Assembly: GCF_000150275.1 (NCBI RefSeq)
Contig: NW_002060954.1
Coordinates: 930,001-994,000, forward strand
Reading direction: 5' to 3'
Length of the DNA stretch: 64,000 nt
DNA from: Trichoplax adhaerens
Taxonomy: Eukaryota > Animalia > Placozoa
Under the pieces are notes generated by a model. That model worked only from the letters and a program-made list of their open reading frames with translations. It was not told where the DNA came from and searched no databases. This document shows, one piece after another, positions 6,610 through 63,980 of the stretch; the first letter of the stretch is position 1, and every line of letters starts with the position of its first letter. A program made the translations under genes and the position numbers.

Positions 6610-7060
6610 CAGTACAGTACGGTGGCAAAATGGAAAGTACTGTACACTGTAGACTGTACTCTATCACTCGGGCTCTCTGTGTACTGTACAAGTGTATAGG
6701 ACAGTACAGTACGTCCACTACAGTACAGTGCTGTGTCAACAGCTTGAGCAATACGACTAACACGAAGTGAGCTAAAAATTGAAGATGGCCAAGGATGATT
6801 CTATGCAGTACTGTAATTATTATGGCGGCAGATAGAGGAGTTATTTATTGCACAGTACAGCAATAAGGTCGTGAAATATAGCCATCTAAATCTTCTTCGA
6901 TACTTCAGCTGTGAGCTATGGTAAAAAACTATGTGAAAATAGATACCATATGAAATGGTAGACTGTCATCTGCAGTGAACAACTACAGTACTGCACAGTT
7001 GCTACCGGTGTACAAGTGCAGTAGTACTAGTACACTACTAGAGTACTGGTACAGTACAGT
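6610..7060. promoter_or_regulatory. TACAG/CTGTA pentamer cluster in the PPP1R37/COX7A2L divergent gap
   Basis: Repeated cagtacagtac, gtactgtac and tacagtactg motifs between the two divergent ATGs (6396 and 7914). Confidence 0.55.
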
Positions 7061-7742
7061 ATGTCATTTTTCACAGCCACAGGCTCCCAACTGGTGATAC
7101 CGACCGTGTCACACACACACACTTACCACTGACTTTACCAGTCATATGGTTACTATCAACTTGATGGTCTCCAGGAAAGTCCGTCTGCACGTCTGTACCG
7201 CACCCTGCCGAGTCACTTGTACTAGTACACTACTAGTACTGCACAGTATGTCATTTTTCACAGCCACAGGCTCCCAACTGGTGATACCGACCGTGTCACA
7301 CACACACACTTACCACTGACTTTACCAGTCATATGGTTACTATCAACTTGATCGTCTCCAGGAAAGTCCGTCTATACGTCTGTATCGAATCCTGCCGAGT
7401 CACTTGTACTGCACAGTATGTCATTTTTCACAGCCACAGGCTCACAGCTAGTGATACCGACCGTGTCACACACACACTTACCACTGACTTTACCAGTCAT
7501 ATGGTTACTATCAACTTGATCGTCTCCAGGAAAATCCGTCTATACGTCTGTATCGAATCCTGCCGAGTCACTTGTACTGCACAGTATGTCATTTTTCACA
7601 GCCACAGGCAAAGTCACAGCTAGTGATACCGACCGTGTCACACACACACACTTACCACTGACTTTACCAGTCATATGGTTATTATCAACTTGATCGTCTC
7701 CAGGAAAGTCCGTCTATACGTCTGTACCGCATCCTGCCGAGT
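7057..7742. repeat. Tandem repeat, 4 copies of a ~168-187 bp unit with an internal (CA)n tract
   Basis: Units begin cagtatgtcatttttcacagccacagg at about 7057, 7244, 7414 and 7582 and are nearly identical. Confidence 0.95.
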
Positions 7743-7913
7743 AGTGTACAAGTGTACACTGTACAGTACGGTATTTACCGTTCGTTGCTTCTTCCTCCGC
7801 AGCTGTGCCCTGCCAGCTCTTCTAAATCTACAGAGATTAACTACTAGACTGTTGTTTAGTTTGGCTTAATTTGAACTGGAATTATTTTAAGGGATTGAAT
7901 TCATCATCCAATC

Positions 7914-11033: not shown

Positions 11034-13511
11034 CTATAATGGAAAATAAGAGGTTATCAGAGATCTGCACATTGGACATGTTTGAACTTGCAGTAAACAT
11101 CTCTGGCACAAACAGCTATGCCGACATGGCAATAAGACGCTTGTAATTGCCTGTGTTTGACAGACTACACATACATTATTTAATTCTTCATTTTCAATGG
11201 TATTATCAGTTGAAATAAGGTCAGATTCGGTTTGCAAAGATTCATTTTCTTGATCTACAGCAAAAATTTTCTATAAACATAACAAGGACATAAGATTTTA
11301 TCTTTAAAATTTCATAAATCTATTTGGAAGTATCTTTTGACGTTAAGCTTTTAAATGGCAGTATTAAGTACAGGTAATGTTAGAAGTAATTAAGGTTTCA
11401 ATATCAAATCTACTATACTAAAGTACAGTAGTTTTCCATCCAAAATCAAACTTTATAAAAGTATTTTAGCTAAACCTGAAGTTGATATATGTGGCCATCA
11501 ATTGTTAATACTGATTTTTGTAGAATTTCACAATTTTGCTTAAAGAACTCGTCAGGTAGATGAATTACCATAATGAGCGCGATCTGCAAATAGAAGATGA
11601 GGATCAAATGTTATTAACATAGGCTGTCTTCAAAAGTGAGTAACTGACGATGCAGAATCTACAGCAACGGTATGGCAACGAAGTATGCAGTACTAGAGTT
11701 TAGCAATTCTAGTGCACAGTTATAAAGAAATTTAATGGTAGCACTATAAGCAGTAAAAATAAATTATAATGCTAAAGTTTTAAAAACTTTGGTGATTCTA
11801 TAAATGATGCAACTATATAGCACTAATAGTGCAAGAGATCTCTAATACAAGATGCAAGGCTATTGTCTGTATTTTCAGTCTGCACTACAGCCTTTATCCT
11901 TTAGTGTAGTTTACCGTATTGTTAAGCAGAAATTAGTAGTTATTATGAACAATTAACCGTGGAGGGATAATTTGGAGTACCAACTCATCCTTGCAGCTAG
12001 AAATCAGAGGGACTAGTAGTTAGATTACTTAGATATAGCCAGATTATGTCCGAAGGGTTTCCGCATTCAAGAAGTAGTCAGTAATTCGTTAATGAGTAGC
12101 AAAAATTTATTCTTCTGTAATACTAAAATTGGGTGTAACTGAGATTGCATCCAGCCCTTGAATTGATAGAATTGATTCAAGTTTGTGACAGATAATTTTA
12201 AGATACTGTAAGGAATGTCTGTCTAATGCAAACTTTTGTTTAGGATAATCTTACGAATAAAATCTTATACATGACATTTTAGAGGTATTTAGGTAAGACA
12301 TGGATGTTGACGTAGTATTCTGAATAAACTTACAACATATTTATCTTCTAAAACATCGACCCTCTCTTCTTCTATGATAATTACTAACGGATACGAACTT
12401 CTCGGTAAAGAACCCAGAGATATCCGTTGATTATGTAATAATTTACAATTTACAATGTTCGGCTTGCATTCTTCGATTCTGAAATATAGCCATAAAACAA
12501 GGTAATATAATTAATATTTCAATTTATACAGTAGCATACTACACTGTATTTCTCTAAACTTGTATTGTTGGTTTAGAATATTCTCTAATTACAAGCTCTC
12601 GTAGAATGGAATATAATGAAAACTTTATTATCGACAACCTAGAGCAAAGATTTAGTACTTATACGTCGTAAACTTCGTAATACAGTAATTATAATTATTA
12701 GGTATTCAACAGCTAAACAAACGCGTGCAATGCAAGTACTGTCATCTTTAGAAAGTCGAGCTATTATAAATAATCTCAAGACATTATAAGCACATAGTTG
12801 AGTAATTGTAATTATTAATACTTGAATTGCTAACAGTTGTTAGTTGTTATAATGATAGCTAGTTAACTACCTACAGATAAGTATTTCATTAAGATCTTTG
12901 TAATTTTAATCTTAAGTGATCCATAAACAAACCGTGAAAAATGAACAGTAAAGATATAGTTATCTACGTATGTAAGTTGCACGGAACTGAGTCGATTCAC
13001 CTTATGGAATGGCTATTAACTTCAGAAATACTAGCAAAGGCATCACTCAGCAACCGTCTCTTCCATCCTGTCTTACGAATACGCTCTTGAATATCACTGA
13101 TTATACGATACGTTTGATCGATTTTGACTCCCCAAAAGCTGTTGAACAAACCGACAGTTTTACTCCTTACTTCCAGTTCAATTCCATCTATCCATAGAAC
13201 ATTTGATGTAAAGTAAATTAGCATTTAAAGCAATCCTTACTAACTTACCGTAGCTATATATTACTTATGTCTGTTGCATAAAAATACTTACTCTCCGTAG
13301 ATGCCGCTTGTTGATTTAAAATCGAGACAGAAAATGGATTCGAAACTCGACTAACTTGGATAGGTCTAGCCAACAACTTGTAGGGATTATTATTTTGGTT
13401 GGTTACTGTAAATCCTCCCACTAGCCGAGTCAAGTAGCACGATATAACAATACAACACATAAATATTACTGCAATAGTATAATCTAAACCTTCATTCACT
13501 TCATTATTCAT
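11034..13511 (-). CDS. CGRRF1: Cell growth regulator with RING finger domain 1 (N-terminal TM, C-terminal C3HC4 RING E3 ligase)
   Basis: Exons 13292-13511, 13001-13187, 12334-12478, 11476-11583, 11034-11270. Hydrophobic N-terminus, FWGV motif and C-terminal CVVCQTQAITSVLLPCRHSCLCQRCLLQVQTCPMCRS. Confidence 0.8.
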
Positions 13512-13891
13512 ATTGGTAATGCCTGAAACTCCATTAGATCTCTTCCATAACCTAGCTATCCAAGGGATGAACAGTATTTATAGCAACTTAACTACGAGGA
13601 ATCAGTTTGAGCGATATGGTGCATAATGCAGCTTTCAGTACTGTACCTCTTACTAGAGTACTAACAACTGATGAAATCATCACAGTACGGTACGGTACCC
13701 TAGTGATTGTTATTACTGTAGTAGAAGCTCGACAGTATCCTACTTTTGCATTCATTGCATGCCTGGAGCTCACCGGACACCAAATATAAGTTGTAATATA
13801 CTATTAATTACTAAATGATTAGAAGTTAAGACTACGAATACAAGGCGACTAGCTCATCAAGATTAAAGTTAGTCATTTTCTATCTGGTTAA
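13512..13891. promoter_or_regulatory. Compact 380-bp bidirectional promoter, CGRRF1/FANCL
   Basis: Divergent ATGs at 13511 and 13892, with cagtactgtac and cagtacggtacggtac motifs at about 13636-13700. Confidence 0.6.
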
Positions 13892-16800: not shown

Positions 16801-17765
16801 GATGTAAACCCGTACTATCCATCAACTATTCCTCAGTATCGATTTTTTGGAACAGATCATAGTAAGCTAGCTTCACAATTACATTAAAATAATGCAGAAT
16901 ATGATACACGATGATTTTCGATTCTTATTAATTATAATTTTTTTTTATTGTTTTTATTGTAATACAGATGTTTCTTTATTGAAGCAAAAATTGAATAATA
17001 ACTTACAGTTATGGTTAGATAGCATCGTTATCAATAATAGCGACTTTTTTGTATTATAAGTAACATTTGTAATATTATCTTTATTTTTAACAAGGAATGA
17101 AAGGAAATCATTATTGACTAACTTGCAAAAAATTTTAGAAATCTCAATTCCGTCTCCTACAAATAGTCAGAAAGAAGTATGTAGATTATGTAAATGAAAA
17201 TTCGTATATCTTGTATAACGCGTACAATATACAGCACTACACTATGCTTTCAAGAATAACACCATTATTCTTGAAACTTTCTTTTAAAAATATAAACAGG
17301 AGTTTATTACACCCTGTGGGATCTGCTGTGGATATCGCCTTAATGCGACACTGCCTGATAAAGTTTGCGATTATTCTTTGTGTGAAAAACAATTTCATTC
17401 GTTGTGCTTATTAGAGGTAATAACTTTCAACCAGAAATTGGAGTTGTGTCTTGTTAATTTTATGGGATAGAAATTTTAATATATCTATATTTGATATATT
17501 TCATGCTAATTAAATACCTTTTAGTGGTTGAAAACGTTGCCTTCATCCCGTACTAGCTTCAGTGTAATTCATGGACAATGTCCATATTGTAAAAAGGTAA
17601 GTTATCAAATTATAACTCTTCTCACATTTCCAGAATGCTTATCATCAACTACAAAGTGTGTCTCATGTGGTAATATACTGTGTACTGGCTTAGCTTAAGT
17701 CATCTCTAATCTATCGAACTATTGCTTTATCCTAGCCACTTTCAATGGAATTGAATTTTAAGTGA
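13892..17765 (+). CDS. FANCL: E3 ubiquitin ligase FANCL, about 14 small exons
   Basis: Exon 1 (13892-13984) reads MSYQNSLFGNCPLLIPQNDDLTCYEGFITVQ. Internal FFDVMDEIDKNTWVLEPQKASRASKERRFCLG. C-terminal RING CGICCGYRLNATLPDKVCDYSLCEKQFHSLCLLEWLKTLPSSRTSFSVIHGQCPYC, stop at 17763-17765. Confidence 0.92.
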
Positions 17766-18504: not shown

Positions 18505-20376
18505 TCAGCTAGATGATGAATCGTAATCATCCTCATCAACTATTCGATTAGTATTGACAAATAAATCGTCGTCTGATGCGCTTTCTGATGCATCTTTATC
18601 TAAATCTTCATCTAAATCTTCATGTGTCTTAGCGCTGTTCTCGCGATGCATAGATGCATTATTCGTAACGAATTCTTCAGGCCTATTACAAGCAGTTTAA
18701 TTCGTACTTATTAGAACTGTTATCTTTCTATGCACGACCTACCGGTTACGATATTGTTAATATAACTCAGAACAAGAAGGAAACTGACCACAAGTTTTCC
18801 TCTTTAAGACTTTTAATTTGATCTGCATTAAGCACCGATGAAATTTCAGCTCTAACTTTATTGCCTTCCTCAATTGGATCTACAATTACGTAATCGCCTG
18901 TATAGCAAGAATAGGATAAACATAATTTAAAATATTTAATACTAACGTTATTTTAATTTATATGCGATATTCAATTCTGATTTACAATCCATAATTCTAT
19001 CTATGAATTGTACTGTATGATCATTGAGTGTAAAGGTTGCAATTATAGCTCTATCTACAGTTAAGTAAATCGTAAATTAACATAAAACTACGGCTTAGTT
19101 TACCTCGTTTAATCCAAATCACCCGGCGAAATTTGGATGGCATACTGCTTAAAAAGGTTTCACCAGATGCTGTAACCACCTCATGTAAATTGTTACCTCT
19201 ACTAGCTACAATCTGGTAGATAAAAAATAATATTTTTTCACTTTGTGCCTTGTATCTGGTTATGAAATATACTGCACTGCATTTACACTACATGATACTC
19301 GTATACTGTGAACTACTGTACTAGAAGAGTACTATTATTCTTCTAGTAGTCCAGGCCAGCATATTTGGGAATTTGCTAATAATATTTTAGACGTGGAATA
19401 CGGATCAGAGCTGCGTAATAATATTATTATACCCCTATTAAAGTATGAGTACATCGAGAATCAAATGATATCTATGACAATTTGACGCTTTTCTAACTTG
19501 TATCTAATTCAAATAATTAAAGTGAATAATTGGATGCAGTGATCACTAAACAATTTAATTGAATATGCTATCTTTATGCTAAGCGCGACAAATAATACTG
19601 TACTGTACGCGTATGCGATATATTGTAGTGTACCATAGTACGAGCGCTATAAAGCATTGCAAAAGTACTTATTTTTATCTACAGGTCTACTGTATATCTT
19701 GAACTAGTATTTCGTTCTAATGTAAATTTTCAGCGTACCTTAAAAATAAGTAACGATTAGCAACCCTTTGAGACAGAATTTGAATAATCTTATATAGTGT
19801 ATGAATTCTTCGCAAATATAGAACAGTAGTTACAGTACTTTTCTGAAGTGAATAAGAGTGCGGGATCATGATTGATTCCTAATTCGTATTTTGGCAATTC
19901 TATCAATTGAAATCATAGCACTACACCACTACAGTACTGGGATAATGATATGTTGACTAATTTAGGTTCTGCATTATACACTAATTAGTATGGGGCATAT
20001 GATACAGTACACTGACTATCTTGAAACGAATTTCTACAATATTTACTATATTGATCCCTAACGTGTACATGCGTATTCACTAGTAGTAAATAAAACTCTT
20101 GATTAATTTACATGATAATTTTTACACCAATCACGACTACCTAATTTTTTACCTTACTTATTAGTCAAGAATCTCATGTCTCATAAGTTAACTTATAATA
20201 CACGTATACATACTACATATCGAGAGATATAATTAACAAAATTCTTTCTGCTCATTGTATATATATATGTCATATATATCAATAATCACCTTAACGATCT
20301 GTTGTGACTCCGCTAGGGAAACATCACCAGTCAGTAATTCTTGTCGCACATATTTCTTCTTAGTAGCCTTCGACAT
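18505..20376 (-). CDS. EIF1AD: Probable RNA-binding protein EIF1AD (eIF1A domain)
   Basis: Approximate exons 20290-20376, 19104-19212, 18789-18897, 18505-18682. Peptides [61 protein letters not shown] and [10 protein letters not shown]. Confidence 0.92.
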
Positions 20377-20584
20377 TGCTAGAGGTATCCACAAATATGC
20401 AGTACTGTATCAGACATTGAAGAATAATAATTTTCTTTTATAGAAACTTACAGATGTATAAGTTGAATTTTGAATGGATAAAACAAGTTATTAACGCATA
20501 TTCTTCGCCATCAGAAATGGTGCACGATTTGCAGGTGCGGTATGGTAATTAATCAGAGAACTGATGAGCCACCGTAATTTCCAT

Positions 20585-21305
20585 ACAGAGTACTGTACAC
20601 TACTGTACCCAGTAAGAGAGTTGTCAGTAAGAAGTCGGTTCGGTCCGGTTCAGGACTTCAACAGCACTGTCTGTACTGTACTAGTAGAGTACAGTACTGT
20701 AGTGTGTACTGTACAGTACAGTACTGTACTTGTACAGTGTACAGTACAGTACAGTACTGAATCCTTTCCGGTAATGGTAAGTACAGTACAGTACTGTACA
20801 GTACTGTACTGTACTGTACTGTACTGTACAGTACATGTACTGTACTGTACTGTACTGTACTGTACAGTACATGTACTGTACTGTACAGTGTACAGTATAC
20901 AGTATTGTACTGTACACTACTGTACTCGTGTACAGTATGTACTGTACTGTACCCATAAGAGCGCTGTCAGAAAGAAAAGCGATTTGATTCGGTACGGTTC
21001 GGTTCAGGACTTCAACAGCGCTGCACGTCTGTACTGTACAGTAGAGTGTACAGTATTGTACATGTATGTAGTGTACTGTAGCTACGGTACAGTGTACTGT
21101 ACAGTACTCAATCGTTCCCGGTAATGGTCAGCCCAGTACTGTACTGTACAGTACAGTACAGTACACAAGTACAGTACAGTATTTTGGATTTTTTTAAATA
21201 CTGTACTGTAAACGGATCGGATTTGATTGGGAGTGACTGTACAGTACTAACGACGAAGCTGTACAGTGTACAGTACACTACCGTTTAGTACTGTACACTG
21301 TCAAA
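20585..21305. repeat. Densest TACAG/CTGTA pentamer array, embedded in a diverged ~354-bp tandem duplication
   Basis: Long (gtact)n and (tacag)n runs. ggttcaggacttcaacagc occurs at 20647 and 21001, and ccggtaatggt at about 20768 and 21118. Confidence 0.9.
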
Positions 21306-21596
21306 TAAATTCAATATTAACGACTCCGGTGATATTTGAAATTTATTTTACTGTTGGCGCGATTAAGCTACTGTACCGTACAGATTAGACGTCATCTCTA
21401 ACGGACGACAAGAAGAATATAACAGGTAAGAAAAAGCATGGCTAAAGACTGGTAAAAATGAACTATAATTTAATATTCTTTTACAGCTACTGATGCTATT
21501 TGAATTACCCGACTTAGACTTTGTATCGGTAGCAGGATGTGGAAGCTGATCTTTTGTAACATTTTCCTCTTCTAATCATTAGGCAGCATTGTCAAG

Positions 21597-21869
21597 ATGA
21601 GTTCAACCAGTGTCAAGCACCAAAATTTTATTTCCGAACCAATGGGTGACAAACCTGTTACGGAACTTGCAGGAATTGGTGATGCTCTAGGCAGTAAACT
21701 TCATGAAATAGGCTTCGATAAAGCTTATGTCGTCCTCGGCCAATTCTTATTATTAAAGAAGGACGAAGAATTATTTATGGAGTGGCTAAAAGATACTATC
21801 GACGCGAACAAAAAACAAGGCGGAGACTGCGTACAGTGTTTAGTGGAATGGTGTGATGCATTTCTGTAA
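21597..21869 (+). CDS. BANF1: Barrier-to-autointegration factor, 90 aa, single coding exon
   Basis: [28 protein letters not shown]...[28 protein letters not shown]...EWCDAFL is a typical BAF sequence. Likely 5'UTR intron 21426-21582. Confidence 0.97.
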
Positions 21870-27793: not shown

Positions 27794-27914
27794 GCGTCTA
27801 ATTCCGATCTAACGATGCTAATAATTTGGCTGCTCTGCTATTTGCTCAATCTTTTTCCTGCTTCTGCGTCGGTATAAATGTTAAAAACATTTGTTATTGC
27901 AGTGCATAACGTCT

Positions 27915-28335
27915 AGGCGGTACAGTACGCATGCACCGTACAAGGGTACCGCTTCCGAAACGAAACCGTCTCTGAGCTTTTCCTACTGCTGTGCATTGGA
28001 CAGACACACTCACGGTGGTAGTGGTGTTCAAACAGGCATTTCGCACTAGGAGATTGACTACAAAAAAAATCTCCATGCTGTATGGTGCAGTGTGCTCGGC
28101 ACGTGCTGACGTACGGCTGCCGGGTTGCGTGCAGTACATACAGTCCAATGTACTGTACACTGTACACTTTACATTTACTGTGCTGTACTGTACACTGTAC
28201 TGTACACGAGTTGGAGGTGAAACCATAGTCCATAGGGTATGTCCAAGTGTCCGTTGTCCAAGTCTCCTTCTAGTGGTCCATGTATTGGGTTATGGTTTTA
28301 CAGTATTTGTATGACATACTGTACAGTATACAGCA
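27915..28335. promoter_or_regulatory. Pentamer cluster and GC-richer segment in the BRMS1/NDH-2 divergent gap
   Basis: tgtactgtacactgtacac and gctgtactgtacactgtactgtacac at 28149-28207, with further copies to about 28690. Confidence 0.55.
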
Positions 28336-29719
28336 CATTAAAAAAGCTGTCAAAGTAAAATCATCAAGGTGACTAAAATATTATGCCGGATTTCATTTAA
28401 TTAAAATGATCAGCAAAACAGTCAAGTCTAATCAAATAAAACATGCTCGTGCATAGCTGTGTTTTCACCGTACAGTACAGTGAAGGTGCATCAAGGAGTG
28501 TAGTAGGTTGAAGAAGACCAGGATCCTTCTTGTTCTAACGTTATAAGTACCTGCGTTGCCTTAGTTTATTACAAGTTATGCGAAAAGTTTGGAAAGGGAC
28601 ATTGAAGAAACGTTTTTAGATTCAGATAGATTTACAATACAGTACACTATACTTCAGATCACTGCTACTGTATACTGTACAGTACCATGTATCGTCGTAT
28701 ACGTTCGCTTCCTAGCGAGCGGATTCAGGCTAGTATATGTAAATAAAAGTCATCATATTGTATTCTTGGACACATACATAGCAAGAAAATACTCAAGAAA
28801 ATTCAGTCCACGTTACTAACTTTAAAAGAAAGAGCAAATTATTCGGAATTGCTAGCTGCAGTTAGCTAGTGGAACACCGAGAGCATTTGCCATCAGACTC
28901 TTCCAAAATAGTATTACACTGTAAATAGTCGTCTAAGTCTAAAATCTGTCCGCCCCTTTATTGGATAATAAAAAAGTTGCACTTTCGCCCATGATTTGCG
29001 GCGAATCAACTGCAAGATACCTTATGAGTGGACAGTAGGTAGGCATGACGGGGTAGGGTACGAGAATGCTCATTGCTGATAGACAAAGTTCAGCCAGAGG
29101 AGCCAGCATGGCAAGAAGCTGCAGCTATACATTATAACTACGATTTCTCTATTTGTCACATACTGTACAAAACGTTTGTGCTGCCAAAATTTGCATAGCA
29201 AGTCCACCAGCACGATCTCATTCTTATACCACCTTTTAATCTTAAAGGGTATTTTATAAGCTTGCTAATATTCAAAATGAAAAAGTCATTACATAAATGT
29301 TAGTCGTATACACGTATAATAATTCATTTTTATGTCAAGTATGGCACTTGCAAGGGTATAACCAAGGTAGAAGAAAAGAATCTTTGTTTTGCTAGTATTT
29401 ATTCTCTTCTCCTATGCAACATCGTAGATGGATACAGTATGCTAATAGAAATGTACAGTATACTACAGTATGCTTGTATGTTTAACGAATGAATGACATA
29501 GTACTAGTTACTATGGTAAGAGTGTAGGCTGTTAGTTATACTATTAGACAACTAAAGCCAACGATATTGACAGTAGTGTACCTACTATTTACGGCCCCAA
29601 TGCTGTAGCTATACTGAATGATAGGATAGAAAGAGTCCATAAAAATTGATTCAATTTGAATGAATATTCAGTACGCATGCATTTATAAACTATAAATTGA
29701 TATCTGCATAGGTAAGAAA

Positions 29720-41345: not shown

Positions 41346-41451
41346 GTCTACACAGTTATCGATTCGCTGTGAACGTTGTTTGTTAAAAAAGTAATATCGC
41401 TCTTTCGCTACTATTGGATTCAGTATCCCTGGAAAATCTTATCCATCTGTA

Positions 41452-49816: not shown

Positions 49817-52800
49817 TCACTTCCCAATAGCAATATTTTGAAATTGGTGTCGCAGCTTTTCACGTAATTTATCTCTTCTAATACGAATAACTTTCTTATT
49901 TGCTTCATAATCCTCGATATCTTTCTCAGATATTTCAATATTCTCAGATTGACAATCCTGTTACATTATGATAGCATAAAAATGTCGAGTTGTTGTTTTT
50001 CATAAGTGAAAAGTGAAATTTTCTAAAATTGTATGTAAATTAATAGTAATTTAAGGTCAAAAAATTAGAGTTTTCACCTGATGCTGACTTCCCACAAATT
50101 CTGACCAGCCCATCGAATTTAATAATTCTATTTCTTCATCAGGAATAAACGAATCACCGGGTATTACGACCACCTTCCCGTTAAATATAACACACCAAAC
50201 GGGGTTAATTTAATAGATTACACTATGTTCGACAATAAATAGCGTTTCAAATATTCATCTACACCTCATGCACCATTCGAGAGTAGGAAATGTCAGAAAT
50301 ATCTCAAGAATGAATTATCGCTTAAAATGATTAACCTGATTTTTATTAGGTAAATGATCCCCATTTTCGCAGGAGTGACAAGCATAATCGTCGGTATCCT
50401 TACTGTCGTGTGTTGCATCGCTCGAGTTACTACCGACATCAGTATCATCCTGGTAATTGATGTCATGAATTAATCCGAAAAGAAATAAAATCAAATGTTG
50501 TAGGTTTGGGATCACACTCAAACATACACGCTACAATTAATATACAGTACCTGATCTACTTGATCTTCAGTATCCAAACAGTGGCAACTATCACTACTTT
50601 TCAAATTGGAATCATTATACTCGCTCTCAACGAACGGCAGGGTATTGGCTCGACAATCAATTCCAGCTTTACAAGGTATACCGTCGGTAATTTCTTTAAG
50701 ACGAAAATATTCATGCTTAATTAAGACTGAAGCCTTACTAGCGTATCCTAAAAGGAGGAACTTTCATTAATATACCTTTAGTTCTGCGTTTCTTTCGCTT
50801 AAGGCGTTTTTGCTCTCGTTTGGTTTCTTTAGCTTTGTCTGCTTCTGAAAATTCTTGTAATATCTTTTCTAAACGTGTTTCACCTTCTCCTCCGCGTAAT
50901 ACAATCTACGACGGTAAAATATTATACTTAAGCCCCAGCAGATCATAAAAGTAACGATACTAAATATAGTTGATGCTTTCGTTTATAATTACAAACCTCG
51001 CTTTTCCTCCTTAGTGATTCAATACATAAGTAAAATAACATAATCCACGTTTGTTCTTCAGTACGCAACTTTTGCCATAATCTATGTAATCGCTCCCACA
51101 AGTGAATTCCAATACAGGTTAATATCTAAAATTCGTTAAACAATAATATAAATTTACGGTTTGGTAACAGCATTTGGTGAAAATTACTTCACGTAGCGCT
51201 AGATGATAAACTGTTAACCTCTTCTTGAGCCGCCTCCATCGACTTTGCATGATGCTCCCTACGACTAATAAAGGATACTATGAGTACCCTAATCATTGTA
51301 GATCAATTAGCGACCTAAACCTACTATCATACATCACAAGTTACCTTCCTGATATCTCGGGCTCAGCTCTATCGATCAGATGGGCAATAAAATCTGTATC
51401 ACAACGCACTTTTATACACCTGCAATGCTCATTGCAGCAACAACCAATGCCATCGTATAGATCTTTCCGATATCTGAGCAATTTTAAAACAGTACTTTAA
51501 TACTTTAAACTGCTAAATGGAATATAATTGTTTACGCACTCTTTTTCCGCAATAATGTCCAATTCTCCTAATAGTATAGCAAATGCACGTATAACTTTTG
51601 CTCTGCACTCGGAACAAAATCTATACAATAGGTGCCAAGATTGTAGTATTAGTTAACTGATAATACATCATCATACTTATGTTTTCTAAGATAATTCTCT
51701 GTTGTCCCTAGTAGTAATTGAGAATCTATTGTGACAATCTATGTAAAAATAGCAATAAATGGTATATCATCATACTTATGTTTTCTAAGATAATTCTCTG
51801 TTGTCCCTAGTAGTAATTGAGAATCTATTGTGACAATCTATGTAAAAATAGCAATAAATGGTATATTAGTGGTTGAAAAAATTAGTTATATTAGTGAGAT
51901 GAAATGTCTAACTTCTTCTCTACACTCCTGTGAAAGCGAAATCCAAACATCAATCCAAATCCCAGACGAACGATATTTATGGCTATCTAGAGAATGTAAA
52001 GGACATCGCCTAAGAAAAGGTAATAAGAACAATTAGTATCAAAATAATTTTGTAAAAGCGGCAAATGCCAGCAAGTTATAAAATACTTGTTGCGCCTATT
52101 CTTTGGGATAGTATCCAATATATCTTTCAGTTGTATACTAATAACAAATAGCAGTTAGTTAGTTATCGATGTAATTGCGGCTTTACTAATATAAACATTC
52201 TATTCAAGTGAAATATATAGCTATTGCTCTGTACAGTAGCATAGTAATGCTATTTTAAGATATATTACCTTTCCTTATATAATAAATCATATATAAGGCA
52301 AGGATCTTTCAGGAATCCTCTATCTAATGTAATGTCTAATCAATAATAACATAACCATTAGAATATACATTTAATGTTGATTTTAATTTACACAGAAGGT
52401 TGGCGTATTTATAATTACGGCCAATAATAAAATTTAAGATAGCAACACATGTAGTTGTTAAAATAATAACAAGAGGTTATGTTTAATGACAGGTATTCTT
52501 ATAAACGTAAATCAAATAATTTTATTACCATTTTGTAATAACAGTATTGGTTTCAATGCTAAATCGTTATAAGTCTGCATGTTGCATAGTAAGCCTTCGA
52601 CACTACAATGAAATTTTACATTAAATTAGTATAATAATAGTAAAGTTTGGATCTACAATATATAAAAAATGGTATTTAAAGCATCTCTTTTTTAAGACAG
52701 TTTAGCTCATGAAGTAATTACCTCTTTCGACAGCCGACGCAAGGAATCACTTGAGACATTAGCGAAATCACTTCTTTAGCAGAAACCGAAAAGGTATTCG

Positions 52801-53754
52801 ATACTTCCTCAAGATTTAAATCTTTCATAGACTATACACGACGAGGTTTTATACAGAAACCGTTAATAATAGCATAGCTTAGTTAAGTATAAAATAATTC
52901 AAATACAAATTAAAATCTTATTAATTTTACTATTTTAATATTCAGAAGACTCAAATTTAATTCATTAAAAATGTTTGGTCTACAAGATGAAATTTCATGG
53001 TAATTTACTATCAATAGGCATAGCTGTTAAGTTGACAAGCAAGTGGTTCCTGGTTGTGGCGTGACGAAGCTGATGGGGTACTACAATAGTTGCTCAAGCT
53101 ATGCCTACCATCGAGTTAATCATAAATTGTACCGTACTGACTAACGTCATTCTTGAAAACGTTCAACTTTTTTACGCATTCTAAAATCATCTGTTAATAC
53201 TAGTCTAACATTATGATTGTTAATCCATAAACAATGTTTAAAGTAATTAATAGTAGGATACTATCGCGTTTGCCTTTAATATATCGTAAAACAAAATGTC
53301 AATAGCGCAATGGGCCTTGTAATAAATTGTAATGTCAAAAGGTTACTATCCATTAACTAATTAACAACATTTCCGTCAATATTCATTGCAGTAATACAGA
53401 TCTTTAGTTATCTATGTCCGAATTACCATAGACAATCTACTTACTTGCATGAATTCTTGCAATGTGATATGGTAGCTATTATGCTGATTATTAACTTTAG
53501 GCAAGAGCTCAGTTATCTCCATAATAACCTAAGTTTATGAACGGAAGGATTACCACATAATCATACCAAATTTAAAAGTATAATCGCATCAAAAATTTAT
53601 CATTATATTTTTCATAATATAGAAATTAATGTTTAAGTATGTATTTCTAAACAACCAAAATTTAACTTACGTATCGATTACTTTCTAACATGATAGGTAT
53701 CTGTCTACTATCCAAATGATCGATATAATCCAAACTGCCAACGTATACGCGCAT
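49817..53754 (-). CDS. GGNBP2: Gametogenetin-binding protein 2 (ZNF403); start codon uncertain
   Basis: SRQIPIML, SQVIPCVGCRKSVE, RCPLHSLDSHK, WIDVWISLSQECREE, YLRKHKFCSECR, DRAEPEISGREHHAKS and LTCIGIHLWERLHRLWQKLRTEEQTW, stop at 49817-49819. Confidence 0.9.
51667..51864. repeat. Exact 99-bp tandem duplication containing a whole 62-nt GGNBP2 exon
   Basis: Copies start at 51667 and 51766. Exon copies are 51677-51738 and 51776-51837. Confidence 0.95.
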
Positions 53755-54519
53755 AACTTTTGATGTAATATTCTTCTTTAATATCTCTTTCACCACTGTA
53801 ATTCCTAATAGTTTGATTCATTATTATTAAGTCAATACTACATTTAGGCGAAGAATATTCCTATCAGACCCTGACTAAGTTGCACATCTTCAAATAAACT
53901 ACGATATATAAAAAAACTGTGCAAATGTTGTAGATTCATAGTTATTATTTACAGTATCCATCTTGGTGGATTCTGATCTCGTTTAGATGGAAGTTATGAT
54001 ATGCTGGTGCTGTAACGTTTGATTTGCGGCTAATTAATATAAATTATGATATTTCAATTATATAACAAAAAATGATTATCGGATAGCTTCTCCATGGTCG
54101 ATTATGTTCAGATTTTTGGTAAAATATATTATTAGGGAACCAGCCATCTTATAAGGTATACTACCGTATATTTACAGTATTGCAAACTACTAGCATGATA
54201 ACGGCGATATGCGCAATGAGCGTAGGGGACACGATGATATTTTACTGTAATGCGACTTGCAACACGAGTACACTTGTGCTGCATGACATATCTAGAAATG
54301 TTGCTGAAACGTCTACAGTACGAGTCTATCTTCAATGCATTTGTAGAAACATATCTGCCCATTCTTAGCAAAATCAATCAAGATTTTGGGTGTAAGATCT
54401 TAGTTCATTTGATTCAAACTAGGCCTATTTGCTTGGACCAAGTCTAATGAAGGTATCGATAGAGCCATTCCAGCGGCCTATTTGGCTATATCACAGGGAA
54501 TTGGTTGGGTCCACAACAT

Positions 54520-56280
54520 TCTGTACAGTACACTGTACAGTAGGGGCATTATACAATGGTTGGAATACTGTACAGTGTACAGTATACAATACTAGACGTA
54601 TTTAATTAAAGGATGAAGGCGGTACTTATTTATTTAAACATCTACATGAACATCATAATATTGAGAAATGGGTGATACCTTTGGATACTATCTTTTGCTT
54701 CACGTTTCATGAAAGCATAAATGCGTTTCTTTTACCCTTACCTTACATATTATGTATAATGGCAACGAACTCAATAATATGCGTCAATTTTCAAGTTGTG
54801 TAGCTGTACTCTGCTGTAGTACTACAATTAGTATCGTGAAATTTGGCCTCTTGAATATTATTATGAATCAATTGCAATAATCTAATCATGCGCGTCTTAC
54901 GATGATGAGCTCGCATAAGTTGAAGTTGTCCATAAATATCCTATTATTAAACTAGAATGTTAACAAATTGACCAGATACCTAATAAAATTATTCCTAGCA
55001 CAACCTCATTCCCTACGGAAACGAACATATTTCGCATTTGCGATACATTACAGTCTACAGTACAGTACAGTAGACTCATTCCACTTGTGCAGTATAGCGT
55101 CCAGTATAATGTATAATTACCTATACTGTACTCTATACTACGCCACACTGTTACAGTCTTTATTGTAGTAATATGGCATGGAGAAAGGTCACTTTTTGGG
55201 GGGGGGGGCACATAGATTGACATGATGTCGAATAGTGGCGTATTAGTATCTCTAATCAAACTATCCTAAAATGAATACTTAGCAGAACTATTGCCAGCAA
55301 GTATATTTACTTCAATTGTCATCGCATAGCCTACCTTTACTAGCCAAAGAGTTATTATTTGCCGCCATTTTCGGACTTTTTAAGTCTGTGCTGTCGTGTA
55401 AACTTGTACAGTACTGTACTGTGCCAATGTGGTAGAAGCCGGTTAGGTACAAGACAGTACAGTATAATGTCGCTGTGTGTTTTTATACACGTACTGTACA
55501 GTACAGTTCAGTGCGTGACAATGTGCAGTGCTGTCATCTGACACTCAGGTCTATCTGATAGTGATCGCCTACCTAAATCTTACCGGTAAGATTTGTCCAG
55601 GATACTTTACACTGTAGTCTGGCTGTCGCGTACAGTACATTGAACTACCCTCCATGAAATGCTCGTTGGCTCAAATTGCTCTACAGTACAGTACAGTATA
55701 CTGTACTGTACAAGTTCTTACAACATGTACTGTACATTGTACAGTACAGTACTCCATGATCGCTTACAAATATACTGTCAAACACTAACAAACTTGCTCC
55801 AGTTAAAGATACTGTACAGTATAGTGTACTGTACTGTACTTCAGCAATAAAAGAAGATCTGGACGAATCACCCTTGGATGGACAGACATTTTCGGCCTCT
55901 TCTCGTCAAAATATTGTATTGTGTCAAACACTTCGTTATAACGCTACTTTAGTATGAAGATAATCGATTTTGAATTGACTGATTTTTTCTAAATTAAGTA
56001 ACATTACGCTAAATCTTATTATCTATTACTCCATTCCGCTTGGAGGTAGTTATGTAAGATCATCAATGTTATTAGAATTAGTACCAGTGACTTAGAAAAC
56101 AGGCGCGGAAGATCCATACTAAGTAGCCATTTTGCGATATTTGTGGCTTCATTGAGTAAGAAACGTCCGTTTGTCTGTCTGAGAGAGTGATCAGTCCAGG
56201 TCTTCTTTTAGCAGTCCATGATAGCACTATACAGTACAGTACAGAGCAATGACACTGGACCGGTACTGTACACTGAGTAT
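54520..56280. promoter_or_regulatory. Pentamer clusters in the GGNBP2/FTSJ3 divergent gap
   Basis: Clusters at about 54520-54590, 55050-55140, 55400-55510, 55680-55845 and 56225-56275. Confidence 0.55.
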
Positions 56281-56519: not shown

Positions 56520-59500
56520 ATGGGTAAAAAAGTAAAAGTCGGCAAGAAAAGGAAGGATAAATTTTATAAATTAGCCAAAGAAACCGGTATGATGTTACCA
56601 ACATTCTATTTCATCCCTACTGTAGTATTATAATTAGGTAGACTATTCAGTGTTCCAACTTATGCACTTGCAGAACACAAAAATTGCGAAAAATGATAGG
56701 CGAATAAGTCAGTTATTTATGAATTAGTGTAATGCCAATTGATTATTTACGGTAAGATAGAACCAGTAATTATTACGACAGTCTACAGTACATCAAATAA
56801 TTAACTAAAGCTTGGTGATAAATTTCGGTATCTTGATCTTGCAGGTTATCGTGCTCGCTCAGCTTTCAAGTTAATCCAATTAAACCGGAAATTTCAGTTT
56901 TTAGAAACTTCACGAGTCTTGGTAGATCTATGTGCAGCACCTGGAGGATGGTAAGCCAAGCTTTTTTACATCATATATTTTATTCACTTTCGCACAGGAT
57001 GCATTGTGCTACACAGCAGTTACCAATAAGAAATTGGCAATCAATCATACAGTACTGAATTATGGATTATTTAAGGGATAATAAAATAATTACTCTAGCA
57101 ATCCTACTTTTTACTATTTGTTTATTCGCATAAAATTCTTTATTCAAAAATTGATCTCTTTCCAACATAAACTTTCGTTGATATACCTTTTGACAGCAAA
57201 TGACATGAATACAGTAGCATGTTGTACACTAGGAAATTGGAAACATATCGTAATCTCTTTTTCTCGTGTGTCCGTGATTACAGGTTACAAGTAGCATCAA
57301 GATTTATGCCCATATCTAGTTTGATCGTTGGTAAGCCCGTCGGAAATACTTATTTAATACTTGGCTATTTCCCAATTGCAATCATTTACCATCTCATACA
57401 ATTTTTTACCATGATTTGGTATAATCTAGTATCTTTGCAACTTTATCCTAGAAATCCTACCCCAGTTAATGTTTTCTCTGTTTGTCAATCCCTTTATTGT
57501 GGATGTCAGCTAAAATATTAAATTCTCGTTGCAGGTGTTGATTTAGTAACTATCAAACCAATTCCTAATGTTATTACTTTAACCGGAGACATTACTACTG
57601 ACGCTTGCAAACAGGTTGTTATTGTAATTATTATGTTGCTAATAGTGTAGTAGACCTTTCAACTTACATCGTACTACCAATCAAATAAATTAACATTATT
57701 GTATTATGTGATCATAGATTGTCGATAAAAGCTGTACAGTATGGCTATTTTGGATAACCTCTGTTTTAAGTGCCGTTATTCTTTCTATCGTTATAGGCTA
57801 TCAAAAAGGAACTACATACATGGAAGGCTGATAGTGTACTACACGATGGAGCTCCTAATGTCGGGCAAGCATGGGTTCAGGACGCCTTTTCTCAAGGTAT
57901 GTCCTTTAAATTTCGAAAAATTTTTGGACTATCTTACATTAGTGCATATATATATATCAACATAAGATAGCTCCATCAGCTGTGCTATCACAATAGTCAC
58001 TGTGTTGTATTGTGCATGTGATTTATGACGTTTTATTGTAGCTATGCTACGCAACCCAAGTGTAAAAATTGTTTATTAAGTTATATAATCGCTTTACAGA
58101 ATAAGTATCCTTTCATATCTCAATTATTTAGTTATATCCTGAGCATTATGATTACGCAATACTACAGATTTAAAAACCATGCAAGTATCGGTACTAATAT
58201 CTAAATAGATAATTTTTTCAATTTTGTCTACTCCATCTGTTTCCTTTAGCTCAGCTAACATTAAGTGCATTACGTCTTGCTTGCCAACTCTTAAAGCGTG
58301 GAGGCTGCTTTATAACTAAAGTCTTTCGATCAAAAGATTACTATTCATTAATGTGGGTTTTTCAGCAATTATTTAAAAAAGTCCACGCGACTAAACCGCA
58401 GGTATGCACTATACTATAATTGAGAATTACAGATCAAAACCCAAATTTCGATTTTAATGTACAATAAAGTTTTATATGTACAGTAGTCAACATCAAGAAT
58501 TGAATAAGCTAACATACCATGTTGGTATTCTTATTAATTAAAGGCATCTAGGAATGAATCCGCTGAAATCTTTGTTGTTTGCATGGTACAAATCGAGCAT
58601 ACTTAATTAAACAATAGACGTTTTCTAGTTCAATAATTACGCACAGAATGAAATTAAACTGTTATGTTACTATTATCTTGAAATAGGGATTTTTAGCTCC
58701 TGATAAGATTGACCCCAAGTTTCTTGATAGTAAGCACATTTTTAAAGATATTGAAACGGAAACGAAACAAAACAAAATAAATTTAATGTTTTCTGAGGTA
58801 ACAGAACATAGGCGCTTACATTTCTTGCCTATCCATCTTAACTATAATTGATCCATGTTTGAAAATATGTTGATGCTTTTTATTACTTATTATATAGAAA
58901 AGAAAGGATAGAAATCGAGCGGGATATCCAGACAACAAGCATACACTGTTTACTAGTACACCTGTTACTGATTTTATTACAAGTGAAAATTATCTAGATC
59001 ACTTAGCTTCGAGTAATACGGTAACCATTATATAACTTAACTGTATTTACGTTCTAGACCACCCAATAACTCCTCGTCAAAATACATTCCAACTTTAATT
59101 ACTAAATTTCTATTTTGTCTTGTTGTAATTTCGGGCAATATAAATAGCTCACATTCGATGAGGATAGCTTGATCATTGCGAAGCATCCACTTACCACAGA
59201 GGAAATTAAAACTTATTGCCAAGATATCAAAGTACTTGGTAGGAAAGAAATCAGGTAAGTAAAGTACTCATCACTAATTCTTCACACCTTTACGTAGTTA
59301 AAATATTCTTCTTCTTACTGATTGCAGAACCCTTATAAAATGGCGTAGTGACATTAGAGACTTTTATGAACAAAAGGCAACAGCTAGTGAAACTAAGTAA
59401 GTTATTCCAATTAAAAATAGCAGTATCTTTCTATAGGCATTGATGGTATGCTCCTAATAACTTTGGATATCATACAGGAAAACAGAAAATGACGAAAGCG

Positions 59501-62143
59501 CTGGTGTTGAAAGTGACGATGATGAGGTAAAATGCTATAAAGTACTCTTTTTTAATTTAAAAATAGTAAGTAGGCTTCTTAACTCTCCAATTTTTGCAAT
59601 TAAGGATGCTGCGAAAAAAAAAATCGAAGAGTTTGAAAATGAAGAGGCATCAGAACGGAAAAGGTTTTGACTCATAAGTTGCTATATATAATGATATATA
59701 TTACATCTTAGTCATTTACTTATTCATATTCAAAATATGATGATGATAAAAAGACAAAGACGGAAACGTATGCAGCTTAAACGCAAAGCTAGAGAGAGAC
59801 AACTGCTGAAAATGAAAGTGCCTGATAGTGGTATTAACTTATCAGAAGACAACTCATTATTTTCTCTCTCTACAATTACCGATCCTAAGGTGTTAAGCAT
59901 TAAAATTTTTAGACTTCTGGATTAGACCTTTAAAATTATATCGTATTACCGTAAAGTAAAAACTGACACTTGAAACTAACTACTGTACTTGTTTACTTCG
60001 TTATCAATTGATATCATGAAGAAATTGAGTAATGTCAACAGCGGTGAGATGATGCTTGGTGACGATGAAGATGAAGATAAAACTGAAGCGATGAATTTGG
60101 ATTCGAAAAACGACACCGAAAGTGACTTTGATAGCAATGATAGCTACAGTGATGATGACGACGAAGAAAGTAGAAGTGATACAAATCACTCTGATAATAT
60201 TACTAAAACCATTGGTGACAAAAAGTAAGTAATTACACATTGCTGCCGTAATTCGACGCACTTATAATTTTATAAAGTAATTACGTTATAAAGTCTTAAC
60301 GTCTCTAAGGAAATCATTCGCGCCATTTTCTAATGAATACGTGTTGCAGATCTAGTAATCCTCTTATTATTGAAATGCCGGAAGAACGATCCTTAAAGCA
60401 AAAGACAAATATGTGGTTTAGTAAAAATATTTTTAAAGAAATGGATAATGATCAAGATGAGGAGTTGGACTTTCAACAATCAATATCAAATCTTAAGGGT
60501 AAGCAAATTCGTACGTGAAGTAATAAGAGTAAATCGTAACAGCGTTCCCAACAATGATATTTTACTGTAGCGAGTCTAAATTTAACATTTATTGCATTAA
60601 ATCTTTTATCATATTATTGAAGGAGATAAATACAACTCTTGGAAGGAAGATCCTAAAATGGATAGTAATTATAGAAACAAGAGTAATGGATCTCCATCCA
60701 AGGGAGAAAGTTTGTCCGATACTACCACTACCAATGTACGAAAAGTCGTTAAGAGTGACGATGATGACAGCGATGAGAGCGACAGCGATAGCGATTATGA
60801 TTATTATCAAGGAATGAAAAATAATACCAAAACGATTAACAATGACTCGTCACAACTAATAACTAGAAACGATTTCGAAATTGCTCCTGTAGAAAATACT
60901 ATCGGTATATATGCATACATTGTGAAAAATTTAATTGCAAAATGATACTTACTTCGAGCTCTAAGTTAATCGTTTAATTAAACCTTTGAAGCACCGAAAT
61001 ATTTATCGCCAGAAGGTTTAGCTATTGGAGCATTAGCTGCTACATCGAAAAAGCGAAAAGAAGAATTTATAGATAGTGCTTATAATAGGTAAGCAATACG
61101 CGTATTAATATGGAGGTACTCGAATGTAATTATTATTTATTATACGTATATCATGCAACTTTGTAAATACGATAGATACACTTTCAATGATGAAAATCTA
61201 CCGGATTGGTTTACTGAATATGAGAAAAAGCATTATCAAAAGCAGATACCACTAACAAAGGTATTTCTTAACAAGCCTCTCTTACTCTAATCTAGCAAAA
61301 TTACACATTCACCTTACGATAAATATAATTCTATACATGTACATTTATCGTCGCTTTTATCTTCTTTATTTGTAACATTAATATAATTTAGTATAGTATT
61401 ACGAAGGCTTTATGATAACATTTTTAGGAAGAAATTCAAGAACAAAAGAAGAAATTACAAGAGATTAATGCACGGCCGATTAAAAAAGTAGCTGAGGCAA
61501 AAGCTAGAAAAAAGATGAAGGTAACCTTTGTTTACAACCAGCTGGCATATGCGTATGCCTCATGTACGAATGACTTAATTTTTTAGCTCACAAGCTGCTA
61601 TTCTTATCGTACTCTAAATAGACCTTAAGAAAAGTAGAGAGAATGCGAAAAAAAGCTGAAGCTATTCTCGACACTTCGGACGCCACTGACAGAGAAAAGA
61701 TGTTACAAATAAAAAGGTATTGATTAATTGAAATGTATTTATTTACTGATTTGGTAATTGTAGCTACTAATTATAATCATTATGTTATTATCATAAGTAT
61801 ATACAAGAAGGCTGGAGTAGGAAAGGCAAAAAAAAGCGAAAAACAATATGTAGTAGGCAGAAAAAACTTAGGTATGTCTCTTAAATTTAGCGGCAATACG
61901 GAAATGAAATTGTGCAACTGACGATGACCCCCGGCATTTACCTTAAGTTGTATTTTAATGTGTAATTATCGAAGCTCGGTATTGACATCTGGAAAATTTG
62001 TATCCAGTGATTGTAAAGTTCTGATTTAATCTCTCGATTTTCTAGGTAAAAAGCGGCCACCTGGTGTTAAAGGAAGATATAAAATGGTAGATAAAAGACT
62101 GAAAAAAGACAAGCGGGCCTCCAATAAAAAAAACAGAAAGTGA
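56520..62143 (+). CDS. FTSJ3: pre-rRNA 2'-O-ribose methyltransferase FTSJ3 (Spb1), about 20 exons
   Basis: [23 protein letters not shown]|[85 protein letters not shown] and [19 protein letters not shown], stop at 62141-62143. Confidence 0.95.
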
Positions 62144-63823
62144 GCTACCATGAGACCAATAAAGGAGAAAAATCATAGATTAAGTATTTTAGTTCTTGTA
62201 GATGCATAAAATGAACGATACAGCTTCCTTAACACTTCCTTAATCAATATTTTGTATTTCAAAATATTCATGCGATCGTTATAGTTCCGCTATGTACAAT
62301 ACATGAATAAATCAGATTTATTAACTGCGACAGAAATTTGCAACTAAAATCGAAAACATTACAAATTACATTTACTAAAGCTGTTGCATTATTAATATTA
62401 TTACCATACTCAACAACACAAGTTGCGATATTGTTGTACTTATGATACACGTATTTCGTTACATGAATAGATAAAGCCATTATTTTAATGTTTTATGGTT
62501 ATTAATCAGAATAATATCATTGCAAAGCTAGATAGGGCAATTATTGTTATTTTTATAACTTTAAACCAAAATGTCATTGAAGTAATTGTGATGGCTACTA
62601 TTTACTATCAATATCTGTATTAAACTACATGCTACTAATAAATAGTCTCATTTCATGATATTAATAGCTTAGTAGTGATTGTTATGATTTAGTACTTTAG
62701 CTGTAGATACCGTTTGAGGTTATTGTAGATATGTAGACGATTGCCTTGTTACAGTATAAGTAATCATATTATGACCTAGTAGTGTGACCCGTTATAATGC
62801 ATAATATATCGGTCGTCTAGTTAGCTAGTATGTGCACTGCATGTCGTATAATTTAACGCAATACTCCCAACCTCAATATATACTAGAGCCAATGCAGCAT
62901 TACCAAAGTAATTTTAAAATTTTTATTTTCAGATTAATAGTGTTAAAAGTATACAAACACAACTACTATGCAGCTCAAGGTACTTTAGCATAGTCTCCGC
63001 TTATACTCATAGATTATATATTTATATTAATAATTGTATAATACAAGGTTGCTTGTATATATGTACGTATGCATGCTGCATCCTGTGCATGTCTCCGCAT
63101 TGTCTTTAATATAAAAAGCATACTTTGCGTATATGGCGCAGTCAGTTGCTCTACCTCAGAAAAGTTTCTGAGTTCGAAGGGGAAATTTATCCAAGTCTCT
63201 CCTTCCAGGAACGCTAAGTATAATTAAGTAATTGCATGCACTGTGTGCAGTGCTAACTAACAATCCTCTAATACAGGGCAATGTAAAAGTGTGCGAAATA
63301 GCAAAATAACAGAATGTACTTTGCTATCTTGCTCACCATTTACATACCATTAAAATGATCTCTACCATTCAAAAGGGGATGACACTTCGCTTTACATGTA
63401 CGTATTCAAGAACTTAAGGCCATTTCAGACTGAATCTTTACGGACAGCCGCTAATTTTTGAAACCGTAATGAGTCGAGCCGCGCACAGGGAGTGAGCTAT
63501 AATAATATTAATTCAGAAACAACGCGCAGTCTTCCCAAGACTTATATAATGTCATCTAAACCGATCACGTTGAACTATTGACAGTACCGCTGAATAGTAC
63601 TACATTGCACATTTATCTATGACATCATTTTTGCTAAAGAGCTGTAATGCAGGAAACTAAAATTGTGCGCTGGGATTAGACCTAATGTATTATAGATAGA
63701 GATACAGTATGAAGAAAATATATAAAAAAGAAAGAAATGTGGACAATTTATTCTTACAAGTCTGCCAAATTGGTCAGGTGTAAAATCACCAGCAAAAAAG
63801 AATGTCATCAATCCTGACGTTCC

Positions 63824-63980
63824 TACAGTGTACTGTACAGTGCACTGTTCGTACAGTACAGTACGATACAGAGAGCACCATGTCCACTACAGTACAGTAC
63901 TGTACCGTATACTGTACTGTAGTACAGTACATTTGCTCAGTCACGGTACAGTACAGCACACAGTAGGTGGAAGTACAGTT
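63824..63980. promoter_or_regulatory. Pentamer cluster at the right edge, predicted next promoter
   Basis: Same TACAG/CTGTA runs as in the other divergent gaps. The promoter role is inferred by analogy. Confidence 0.45.

Follow-up and report, generated by a model that had tools for sequence, protein, structure and literature searches.

An orientation mosaic in the promoter-associated (ACAGT)n arrays of Trichoplax adhaerens

Arrays of the pentamer TACAG and its complement CTGTA lie between many of the genes in a 64,000-nucleotide stretch of the Trichoplax adhaerens genome (contig NW_002060954.1, positions 930,001 to 994,000; hereafter the window, meaning that whole stretch). These arrays are almost certainly the promoter-associated (ACAGT)n repeat of this species. 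Among the microsatellites of T. adhaerens, pentanucleotides form the most frequent class, 78% of which is ACAGT (Wang et al. 2010, Biol Direct 5:18, PMC2871265). In that survey, 54% of ACAGT sites were at most 1 kb and 85% at most 5 kb upstream of a gene, the neighboring genes were enriched for translation and kinases, and a transcription-factor-binding site was suggested. The arrays of the window match the published repeat in genome, unit, and upstream bias. An earlier note on this DNA, written from the sequence alone, knew of no description of them; that statement does not hold, because the promoter association was published in 2010 and is no new phenomenon. The window locus does not appear among the ACAGT sites in the listed part of the table of Wang et al., and a literature search by sequence strings and promoter terms returned no further description of the arrays.

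Wang et al. treat the repeat as a plain microsatellite, and their text does not refer to strand, complement, palindromes, or bidirectional or divergent genes. Also absent from it are a view of the arrays as GTAC cores, the switching of unit orientation at 35% of junctions, variants spaced at 7 bp, and arrays in first introns. The mixing of orientations is the only part that looks under-described.

Two further studies of placozoan chromatin bear on these arrays. In Micro-C maps of Trichoplax, Chimaera linked repeats of ACGG and of ACAGT to insulation, and it found that insulation at Trichoplax gene starts is predictable from sequence (Nucleic Acids Research 2026, PMC12817080). Its ACAGT motif is the one described here, and the study connects it with a feature of chromatin at the starts of genes; the link derives from neural-network attribution rather than from binding or perturbation experiments, with no mechanism given. 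Kim et al. (2025, Nature, PMC12221973) described promoter hubs of placozoan housekeeping genes and a loop-anchor motif carried on Mutator terminal inverted repeats (TIRs). Like the arrays, this motif is a placozoan-specific repeated sequence at promoters, and an architectural protein was proposed as its reader. It differs in that it is called repeating ACGG in PMC12817080, and the text of Kim et al. never mentions ACAGT or microsatellites. The only window sequences that resemble the Mutator-TIR motif are GTACG-type variants at 13684-13698 and about 20985-21005. An ACGG-like stretch at 20635-20669 was considered as a dispersed copy of that motif and rejected, since it occurs only twice and both occurrences stem from a local duplication.

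Low-complexity sequences mark broadly expressed promoters in other eukaryotes, among them poly(dA:dT) in yeast, GA repeats with the GAGA factor in Drosophila, and CpG islands in vertebrates. Such tracts are often strand-symmetric and linked to nucleosome depletion. The Trichoplax unit differs from them: it repeats every 5 bp around a self-complementary core and lacks both CpG and homopolymer runs. A promoter of the CpG-island type was rejected, given that the unit GTAC[A/T] contains no CpG and that the arrays are about 40% G+C (33% for the window and genome); any resemblance is functional only. Placozoan genomes are among the most compact of animals, and one 5-bp repeat at thousands of gene starts, with an insulation signal read by a model, offers a tractable handle on promoter recognition in this group.

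Unit structure and orientation mosaic

The window contains 505 copies of the pentamer (249 TACAG and 256 CTGTA). Base composition leads to an expectation of about 66 of each, or about 131 together, and 100 dinucleotide-preserving shuffles yielded 165 ± 11 copies with a maximum of 191. There are 16 tight clusters in the window, a cluster having five or more copies separated by no more than 40 bp; the shuffles average 0.01. The dense two-orientation clusters reported in the earlier note are thus well above expectation. The five most over-represented pentamers of the window are the five rotations of ACAGT (3.3- to 3.9-fold), and a search with Tandem Repeats Finder (TRF) returned period-5 arrays.

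Read from the sequence, each unit consists of the self-complementary core GTAC and then A or T. Neighboring cores are spaced at 5 bp in 360 close pairs; the next commonest spacing is 7 bp (67 pairs), in which the spacer is ACT or AGT, giving CACTG or CAGTG between TA steps. Between cores, the spacer letter is A in 177 cases, T in 162, C in 11, and G in 10. The arrays are therefore better described as self-complementary GTAC cores placed every 5 bp, sometimes 7 bp, and separated by an A/T spacer. Because the unit is a core plus A or T, what had been called an orientation switch is the mere choice of A or T as spacer. The palindromes said to arise at such switches do occur, with the two 12-nt forms TACAGTACTGTA and TACTGTACAGTA present 13 and 19 times in the window, respectively; same-orientation dimers occur 23 and 22 times.

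We scanned the assembly that contains the window, 105,631,681 bp in 1,414 contigs, for a pattern of five cores and four A/T spacers. The pattern matched 2,688 times, compared with 0 for the reversed control. Only 735 of the matches (351 + 384; 27%) keep a single orientation, and the other 73% mix both, which implies switching at about 35% of junctions. A contiguous 264-kb sample, composed of the window and the 200 kb upstream of it on the same contig, gave a similar picture, with neighboring units co-oriented at 57 of 89 junctions (64%). As a control, we scanned metagenome contigs with the same degenerate pattern (120 contigs with a G+C content of 34-63%, presumably from eukaryotes and, judging by contig names, from more than 30 datasets). 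In the (ACAGT)n arrays of these other organisms, 909 of 971 windows are single-orientation (94%), 6% are mixed, and switching is 3%. The useful addition to the published description is hence quantitative: an orientation mosaic, with 73% mixed windows as against 6% for the same repeat elsewhere.

An ordinary slippage microsatellite, with one orientation and decay by point mutation, was rejected on this comparison (27% single-orientation here versus 94% elsewhere). In in-phase triplets, mismatches affect about 3% of core positions (17 of 147 cores have a single mismatch), and 4.6% of spacers are C or G. Point mutation cannot explain the Trichoplax mosaic, because both rates are far below the 35% mixing of A and T. 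To account for the mosaic, therefore, there must be selection that favors A/T spacers and symmetric sites, a process of unit inversion specific to the lineage, or the addition of units in random orientation. The question narrows accordingly to selection for symmetric sites, an inversion process particular to this lineage, or transposon scars.

Three observations accompany the scans. The most mosaic metagenome array (contig L082, of the control set L021-L140; positions 1240-1480, 45% G+C) is built as a higher-order repeat of about 56 bp; the contig was rejected as a placozoan orthologue, as nothing in it beyond the repeat is homologous to Trichoplax. A sister repeat, (GTACG)n/(GTACC)n, forms 33 tracts of at least three units genome-wide, compared with 0 in the control, and 28 of the 33 are single-orientation; the window holds a tract of this type at 13684-13698, and the repeat may be the "repeating ACGG" motif of Chimaera. 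Finally, many of the smallest assembly contigs (C100-C589 and others, about 1 kb each) carry GTAC-pentamer arrays, which suggests that the assembly is broken at the arrays and that the genome-wide count misses some of them.

Arrays and gene starts

The earlier note listed eight dense regions, which were said to cover all six head-to-head gaps, and described the convergent gaps as poor in the pentamer. Seven of the eight regions stand, at 22-96 copies per kb. The eighth, at 13636-13700, is barely an array: it has one copy of the pentamer and six GTAC cores, mostly of the GTACG variant. The five convergent gaps are indeed poor (2.6-7.3 per kb). In what is left of the window, the density is 4.5 per kb. 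The list was incomplete, having overlooked two arrays at 42337-42445 and 42846-43136.

Gene strands were assigned by combining Pfam matches on exons with RNA contigs, a codon-usage score built for this analysis, and inspection of open reading frames (ORFs). The evidence supports five head-to-head gaps: RING(-)/FANCL(+), EIF1AD(-)/BANF1(+), the acidic-protein gene(-)/NDI1-type NADH dehydrogenase(+), the SPB4/DDX55-like helicase(-)/14-3-3(+), and gene K(-)/FTSJ3/SPB1(+). EIF1AD and BANF1 lie head to head within 18505-21869, with both genes and both strands confirmed. The sixth gap, between the LRR gene(-) and gene B(+), would run from 6396 to about 7915 and depends on an unverified candidate ATG exon of 24 codons with a GT donor. 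The proposed placement of the array at 63824-63980 in a head-to-head gap is not supported: this array lies past the 3' end of FTSJ3(+), with no minus-strand gene evident to its left, and its gene partner lies beyond the window.

RNA evidence locates the arrays relative to transcripts, although it consists of Logan contigs, as does the evidence from DNA runs, so contig ends are not true transcription starts or strands. RNA contigs of the helicase gene extend to 39555-39568 in three runs, about 60 bp from the array that begins at 39624. Those of 14-3-3 (41371-41515) start about 50 bp past the last units, which end near 41320-41345. The arrays at 39630-40260 and 40895-41345 had been counted as separate gaps. 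They are halves of a single divergent gap, about 640 bp apart, because the stretch between them has almost no RNA (40379-40575). The two overlooked arrays lie within intron 1 of 14-3-3, since a GT..AG splice joint (41514>43461), found in three RNA runs at a depth of 160-260, spans them. The arrays occupy untranscribed DNA immediately 5' of genes and can reach into the first intron. The same arrays are present in independent DNA and RNA runs from several studies. Contigs of other strains lack 10 nt (two units) at 42879 and carry an extra 29 nt at 42469, and array length therefore varies among strains.

The window genes alternate in strand. Every promoter in the window belongs to a divergent pair, so a signal for divergent promoters cannot be told apart here from one for promoters in general. 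We analyzed the 25 array islands of the 264-kb sample, using a codon-usage log-odds score trained on long ORFs (137 segments scored above 10, compared with 17 in reversed-sequence controls) and summing coding potential within 2.5 kb of each island edge. Of the island sides, 35 had coding potential pointing outward and 10 had it pointing inward (Wilcoxon P = 4e-4). The excess in the outward direction was 848, compared with 13 ± 244 for random placements, and none of 500 placements reached the observed value. Together with the RNA contigs ending within about 50-60 bp of array edges, these results tie the arrays to gene 5' ends. Both sides were outward at 11 of the 25 islands (4.1 ± 1.8 for random placements) and one side only at 13. 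The proposed specificity for divergent promoters is not borne out by these counts, nor by the two first-intron arrays. In general, then, the arrays mark the starts of genes, and about half of them are at bidirectional pairs. Two other ways of assigning strand were dropped: a two-state Viterbi segmentation on the codon score did not reproduce the known alternating genes, and classification by the nearest confident ORF was too sparse and noisy.

A possible binding platform and its alternatives

The earlier note had put forward three candidate mechanisms: one factor bound multivalently, nucleosome exclusion, and cruciform extrusion. The reading we favor, at a probability of roughly 45%, is that the arrays are a cis-regulatory platform bound many times over by a putative factor that reads the WGTACW core, keeping promoters open and insulated. 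Such a factor would recognize the two-fold symmetric core and bind multiply, and the bound arrays would have this effect on either strand, at genes with broad expression. The arrays would expand by local duplication and unit slippage, and a further process, or selection, would flip unit orientation at about 35% of junctions. Growth by duplication and slippage has been partly shown: both act here, because the arrays contain internal duplications of 36 bp and about 354 bp and differ among strains by insertions and deletions. In support of a regulatory platform, a model of Trichoplax Micro-C data learned repeating ACAGT as a motif associated with insulation (PMC12817080). The genes that flank arrays in the window are broadly used ones (EIF1AD, BANF1, DDX55/SPB4, 14-3-3, and FTSJ3), which agrees with the published enrichment near housekeeping genes, but the window holds no cell-type-specific genes for contrast.

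Several points weigh against a platform of this kind. We know of no binding factor for the arrays. The plant SBP domain is a GTAC-binding domain, and an exon-by-exon search left it (PF03110) unmatched in the genome, a weak negative because the search's own controls were also unmatched. The insulation link is derived from a model, and the mere location of arrays at promoters could produce it. Cores (about 3%) and spacers (4.6% C/G) show no extra constraint, and the RING/FANCL gap has almost no array, indicating that arrays are not needed at every promoter. Nor is there polarity along the arrays. Junctions with an A spacer give CAGT on the plus strand and those with a T spacer give it on the minus strand, so a directional initiator should leave right halves rich in A and left halves rich in T. 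We detected no such bias in A/T orientation (70/63 versus 63/56; odds ratio of 0.99), which indicates that the arrays carry no directional information, and a directional "initiator array" was rejected.

A bolder extension of the platform reading is that the mosaic itself is selected, with a dedicated and probably dimeric, multivalent factor reading WGTACW arrays as a strand-neutral promoter and insulator code. We put this forward tentatively and consider it rather unlikely. If true, a promoter identity encoded in a repeat would do the job that CpG islands do in vertebrates.

The alternative that survives best, doubtful but deserving of serious attention, is that the arrays are functionally neutral by-products of a mutational process that prefers open promoter DNA. 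One such process would combine slippage and duplication with template switching, in which the GTAC cores fold back through their self-complementarity. Internal duplications and the differences in unit number among strains point to ongoing repeat instability, as a neutral origin would have it, and the similar, low rates at which cores and spacers decay give no sign of purifying selection on the core. The near unit-wise randomness of orientation (35% switching), the 7-bp variants with CACTG and CAGTG between TA steps, and the presence of arrays in an intron also fit a neutral process. However, the same repeat elsewhere is 94% single-orientation, which argues that the self-complementarity of GTAC does not by itself drive switching, and a mutational process alone does not explain the tight link to the 5' ends of broadly used genes.

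A second neutral route would be the accumulation of Tc1/mariner excision footprints, each cycle of insertion and excision adding one CWGTA unit in random orientation. The canonical excision footprint of Tc1/mariner elements of the Sleeping Beauty type is TAC(A/T)GTA at a TA, and the array unit agrees with it. This heptamer is identical to one array unit plus the flanking TA, and both of its orientations occur. Footprints are single scars, whereas the arrays comprise tens of units at thousands of promoters, and arrays of this kind are not known to have been described as footprints. The Trichoplax genome contains only 11 inactive Mariner/Tc1 fragments (PMC2871265), to be set against thousands of arrays that would need many events each. 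Moreover, 64-65% of junctions join units of the same orientation, rather than the 50% of a pure footprint model, although internal duplications blur this comparison.

It is also conceivable, but improbable, that the arrays act through the DNA itself, with no dedicated protein, to keep promoters nucleosome-poor and insulating. Flexible TA and CA/TG steps every 5 bp might disfavor or phase nucleosomes, or hairpins and cruciforms might extrude under transcriptional supercoiling. The strict 5-bp spacing of cores (360 pairs versus 67 at 7 bp) suits such a role, as do the genome-specific mixing of orientations that creates palindromes and the sequence-based predictability of insulation at Trichoplax gene starts (PMC12817080). 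Single-strand folding was also stronger than in shuffles, with z = -10.1 for 20671-20951 and z = -4.2 for 41071-41222. Against extrusion, the best fold of the larger array makes up 0.1% of the ensemble and its centroid is nearly unstructured, pointing to many slipped registers and no defined cruciform; the smaller array (41071-41222) keeps a clear centroid stem. In the model, folding fits slippery hairpins better than a defined cruciform. Same-orientation runs average about three units, or about 15 bp, a short length for an extruded structure to be stable, and at 40% G+C in a 33% G+C genome, the arrays melt no more readily than the DNA around them.

Chance clustering or an assembly artefact has a negligible probability: many tiny assembly contigs consist largely of arrays, so arrays do disturb assembly, but the 16 clusters against 0.01 in shuffles, the 2,688 long genome-wide matches against 0 in the reversed control, and the recovery of the same arrays in independent DNA and RNA runs from several studies all speak against it.

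Gene map and neighboring repeats

The arrays and genes of the window are listed in Table 1.

Table 1. Arrays, genes, and start codons of the window; copies are TACAG plus CTGTA
Position	Strand	Feature	Evidence or array content
724-903	-	LRR_6	Pfam
6610-7060		GTAC[A/T] array upstream of LRR gene (ATG 6396, -); faces putative + gene, ATG 7915	13 copies, 29 per kb; tight cluster 6613-6728
11037-11270	-	RING finger, zf-C3HC4_3	Pfam
13636-13700		Weak degenerate cluster, RING(-)/FANCL(+) gap	1 copy, 15 per kb
17288-17467	+	FANCL_C	Pfam
19054-19287	-	eIF-1a exon (EIF1AD)	Pfam
20585-21305		Largest array, between EIF1AD(-) and BANF1(+)	63 copies, 87 per kb; TRF period 5, 54 copies
21597-21869	+	BAF ORF (BANF1)	PF02961
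27611-27808	-	Acidic-protein gene, first exon	Coding potential; tested exon without Pfam match
27915-28335		Array about 120 bp upstream of ATG of minus-strand acidic-protein gene	13 copies, 31 per kb
29696-30253	+	Pyr_redox_2; NDI1-type NADH dehydrogenase by eye	Pfam
34955-38267	-	DEAD + CTE_SPB4 (SPB4/DDX55-like helicase)	Pfam
39624-40260		Left half-array, SPB4/DDX55-like helicase(-)/14-3-3(+) gap	37 copies, 59 per kb
40895-41345		Right half-array, helicase/14-3-3 gap; ends about 50 bp before first 14-3-3 RNA contig	30 copies, 67 per kb
42337-42445 and 42846-43136		Two arrays in 14-3-3 intron 1	30 copies, 37.5 per kb
43395-43769	+	14-3-3	Pfam
49820-53860	-	Gene K, unnamed	Coding-potential segments only
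54520-56280		Scattered small arrays, gene K(-)/FTSJ3/SPB1(+) gap	39 copies, 22 per kb
58213-62140	+	FtsJ + Spb1_C (FTSJ3/SPB1)	Pfam; Spb1_C profile end 62030-62140
63824-63980		Window-edge array downstream of FTSJ3 3' end (about 62140)	15 copies, 96 per kb
6396, 21597, 39349, 41452, 56520	-, +, -, +, +	Start codons	ORF reading

The BAF protein of the window falls in the same 90% cluster as RDD47384.1 of Trichoplax sp. H2. The type II (NDI1-like) alternative NADH dehydrogenase gene occupies 29720-32480 and has a mitochondrial-type N-terminus; the array at 27915-28335 is about 1.4 kb upstream of its ATG (29720, +). Gene K(-) contains a 99-bp tandem duplication at 51664-51861, with copies 99% identical.

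The largest array (20585-21305) contains the internal duplication of about 354 bp and the 36-bp higher-order repeat (repeat families D13 and D17; inverted repeat I12). The larger of these duplications (20600-20780 and 20950-21130) includes non-repeat sequence, and the 18-mer GGTTCAGGACTTCAACAG has exact matches genome-wide only at its two copies.

Other repeats adjoin the arrays. Four tandem units of 187 bp (7034-7749; 67-94% identical to the reference copy) border the 6610-7060 array and take up much of its divergent gap, and each unit includes a run of CA dinucleotides and a degenerate GTAC motif. Between the half-arrays of the helicase/14-3-3 gap is an interspersed repeat of about 200 bp (40600-40800), with at least 40 genome copies at 81-92% identity and a roughly 30-fold excess depth in DNA run X1. 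It may be an element resembling a short interspersed element or a miniature inverted-repeat transposable element.

In the 14-3-3 gene, RNA contigs at a depth of 70-82 (41486-41802 and 41816-41845) continue from exon 1 into about 290 nt of intron 1. They end at a (TA)15 tract, and coverage then declines along the intron. This RNA could reflect partial intron retention or an alternative 5' exon.

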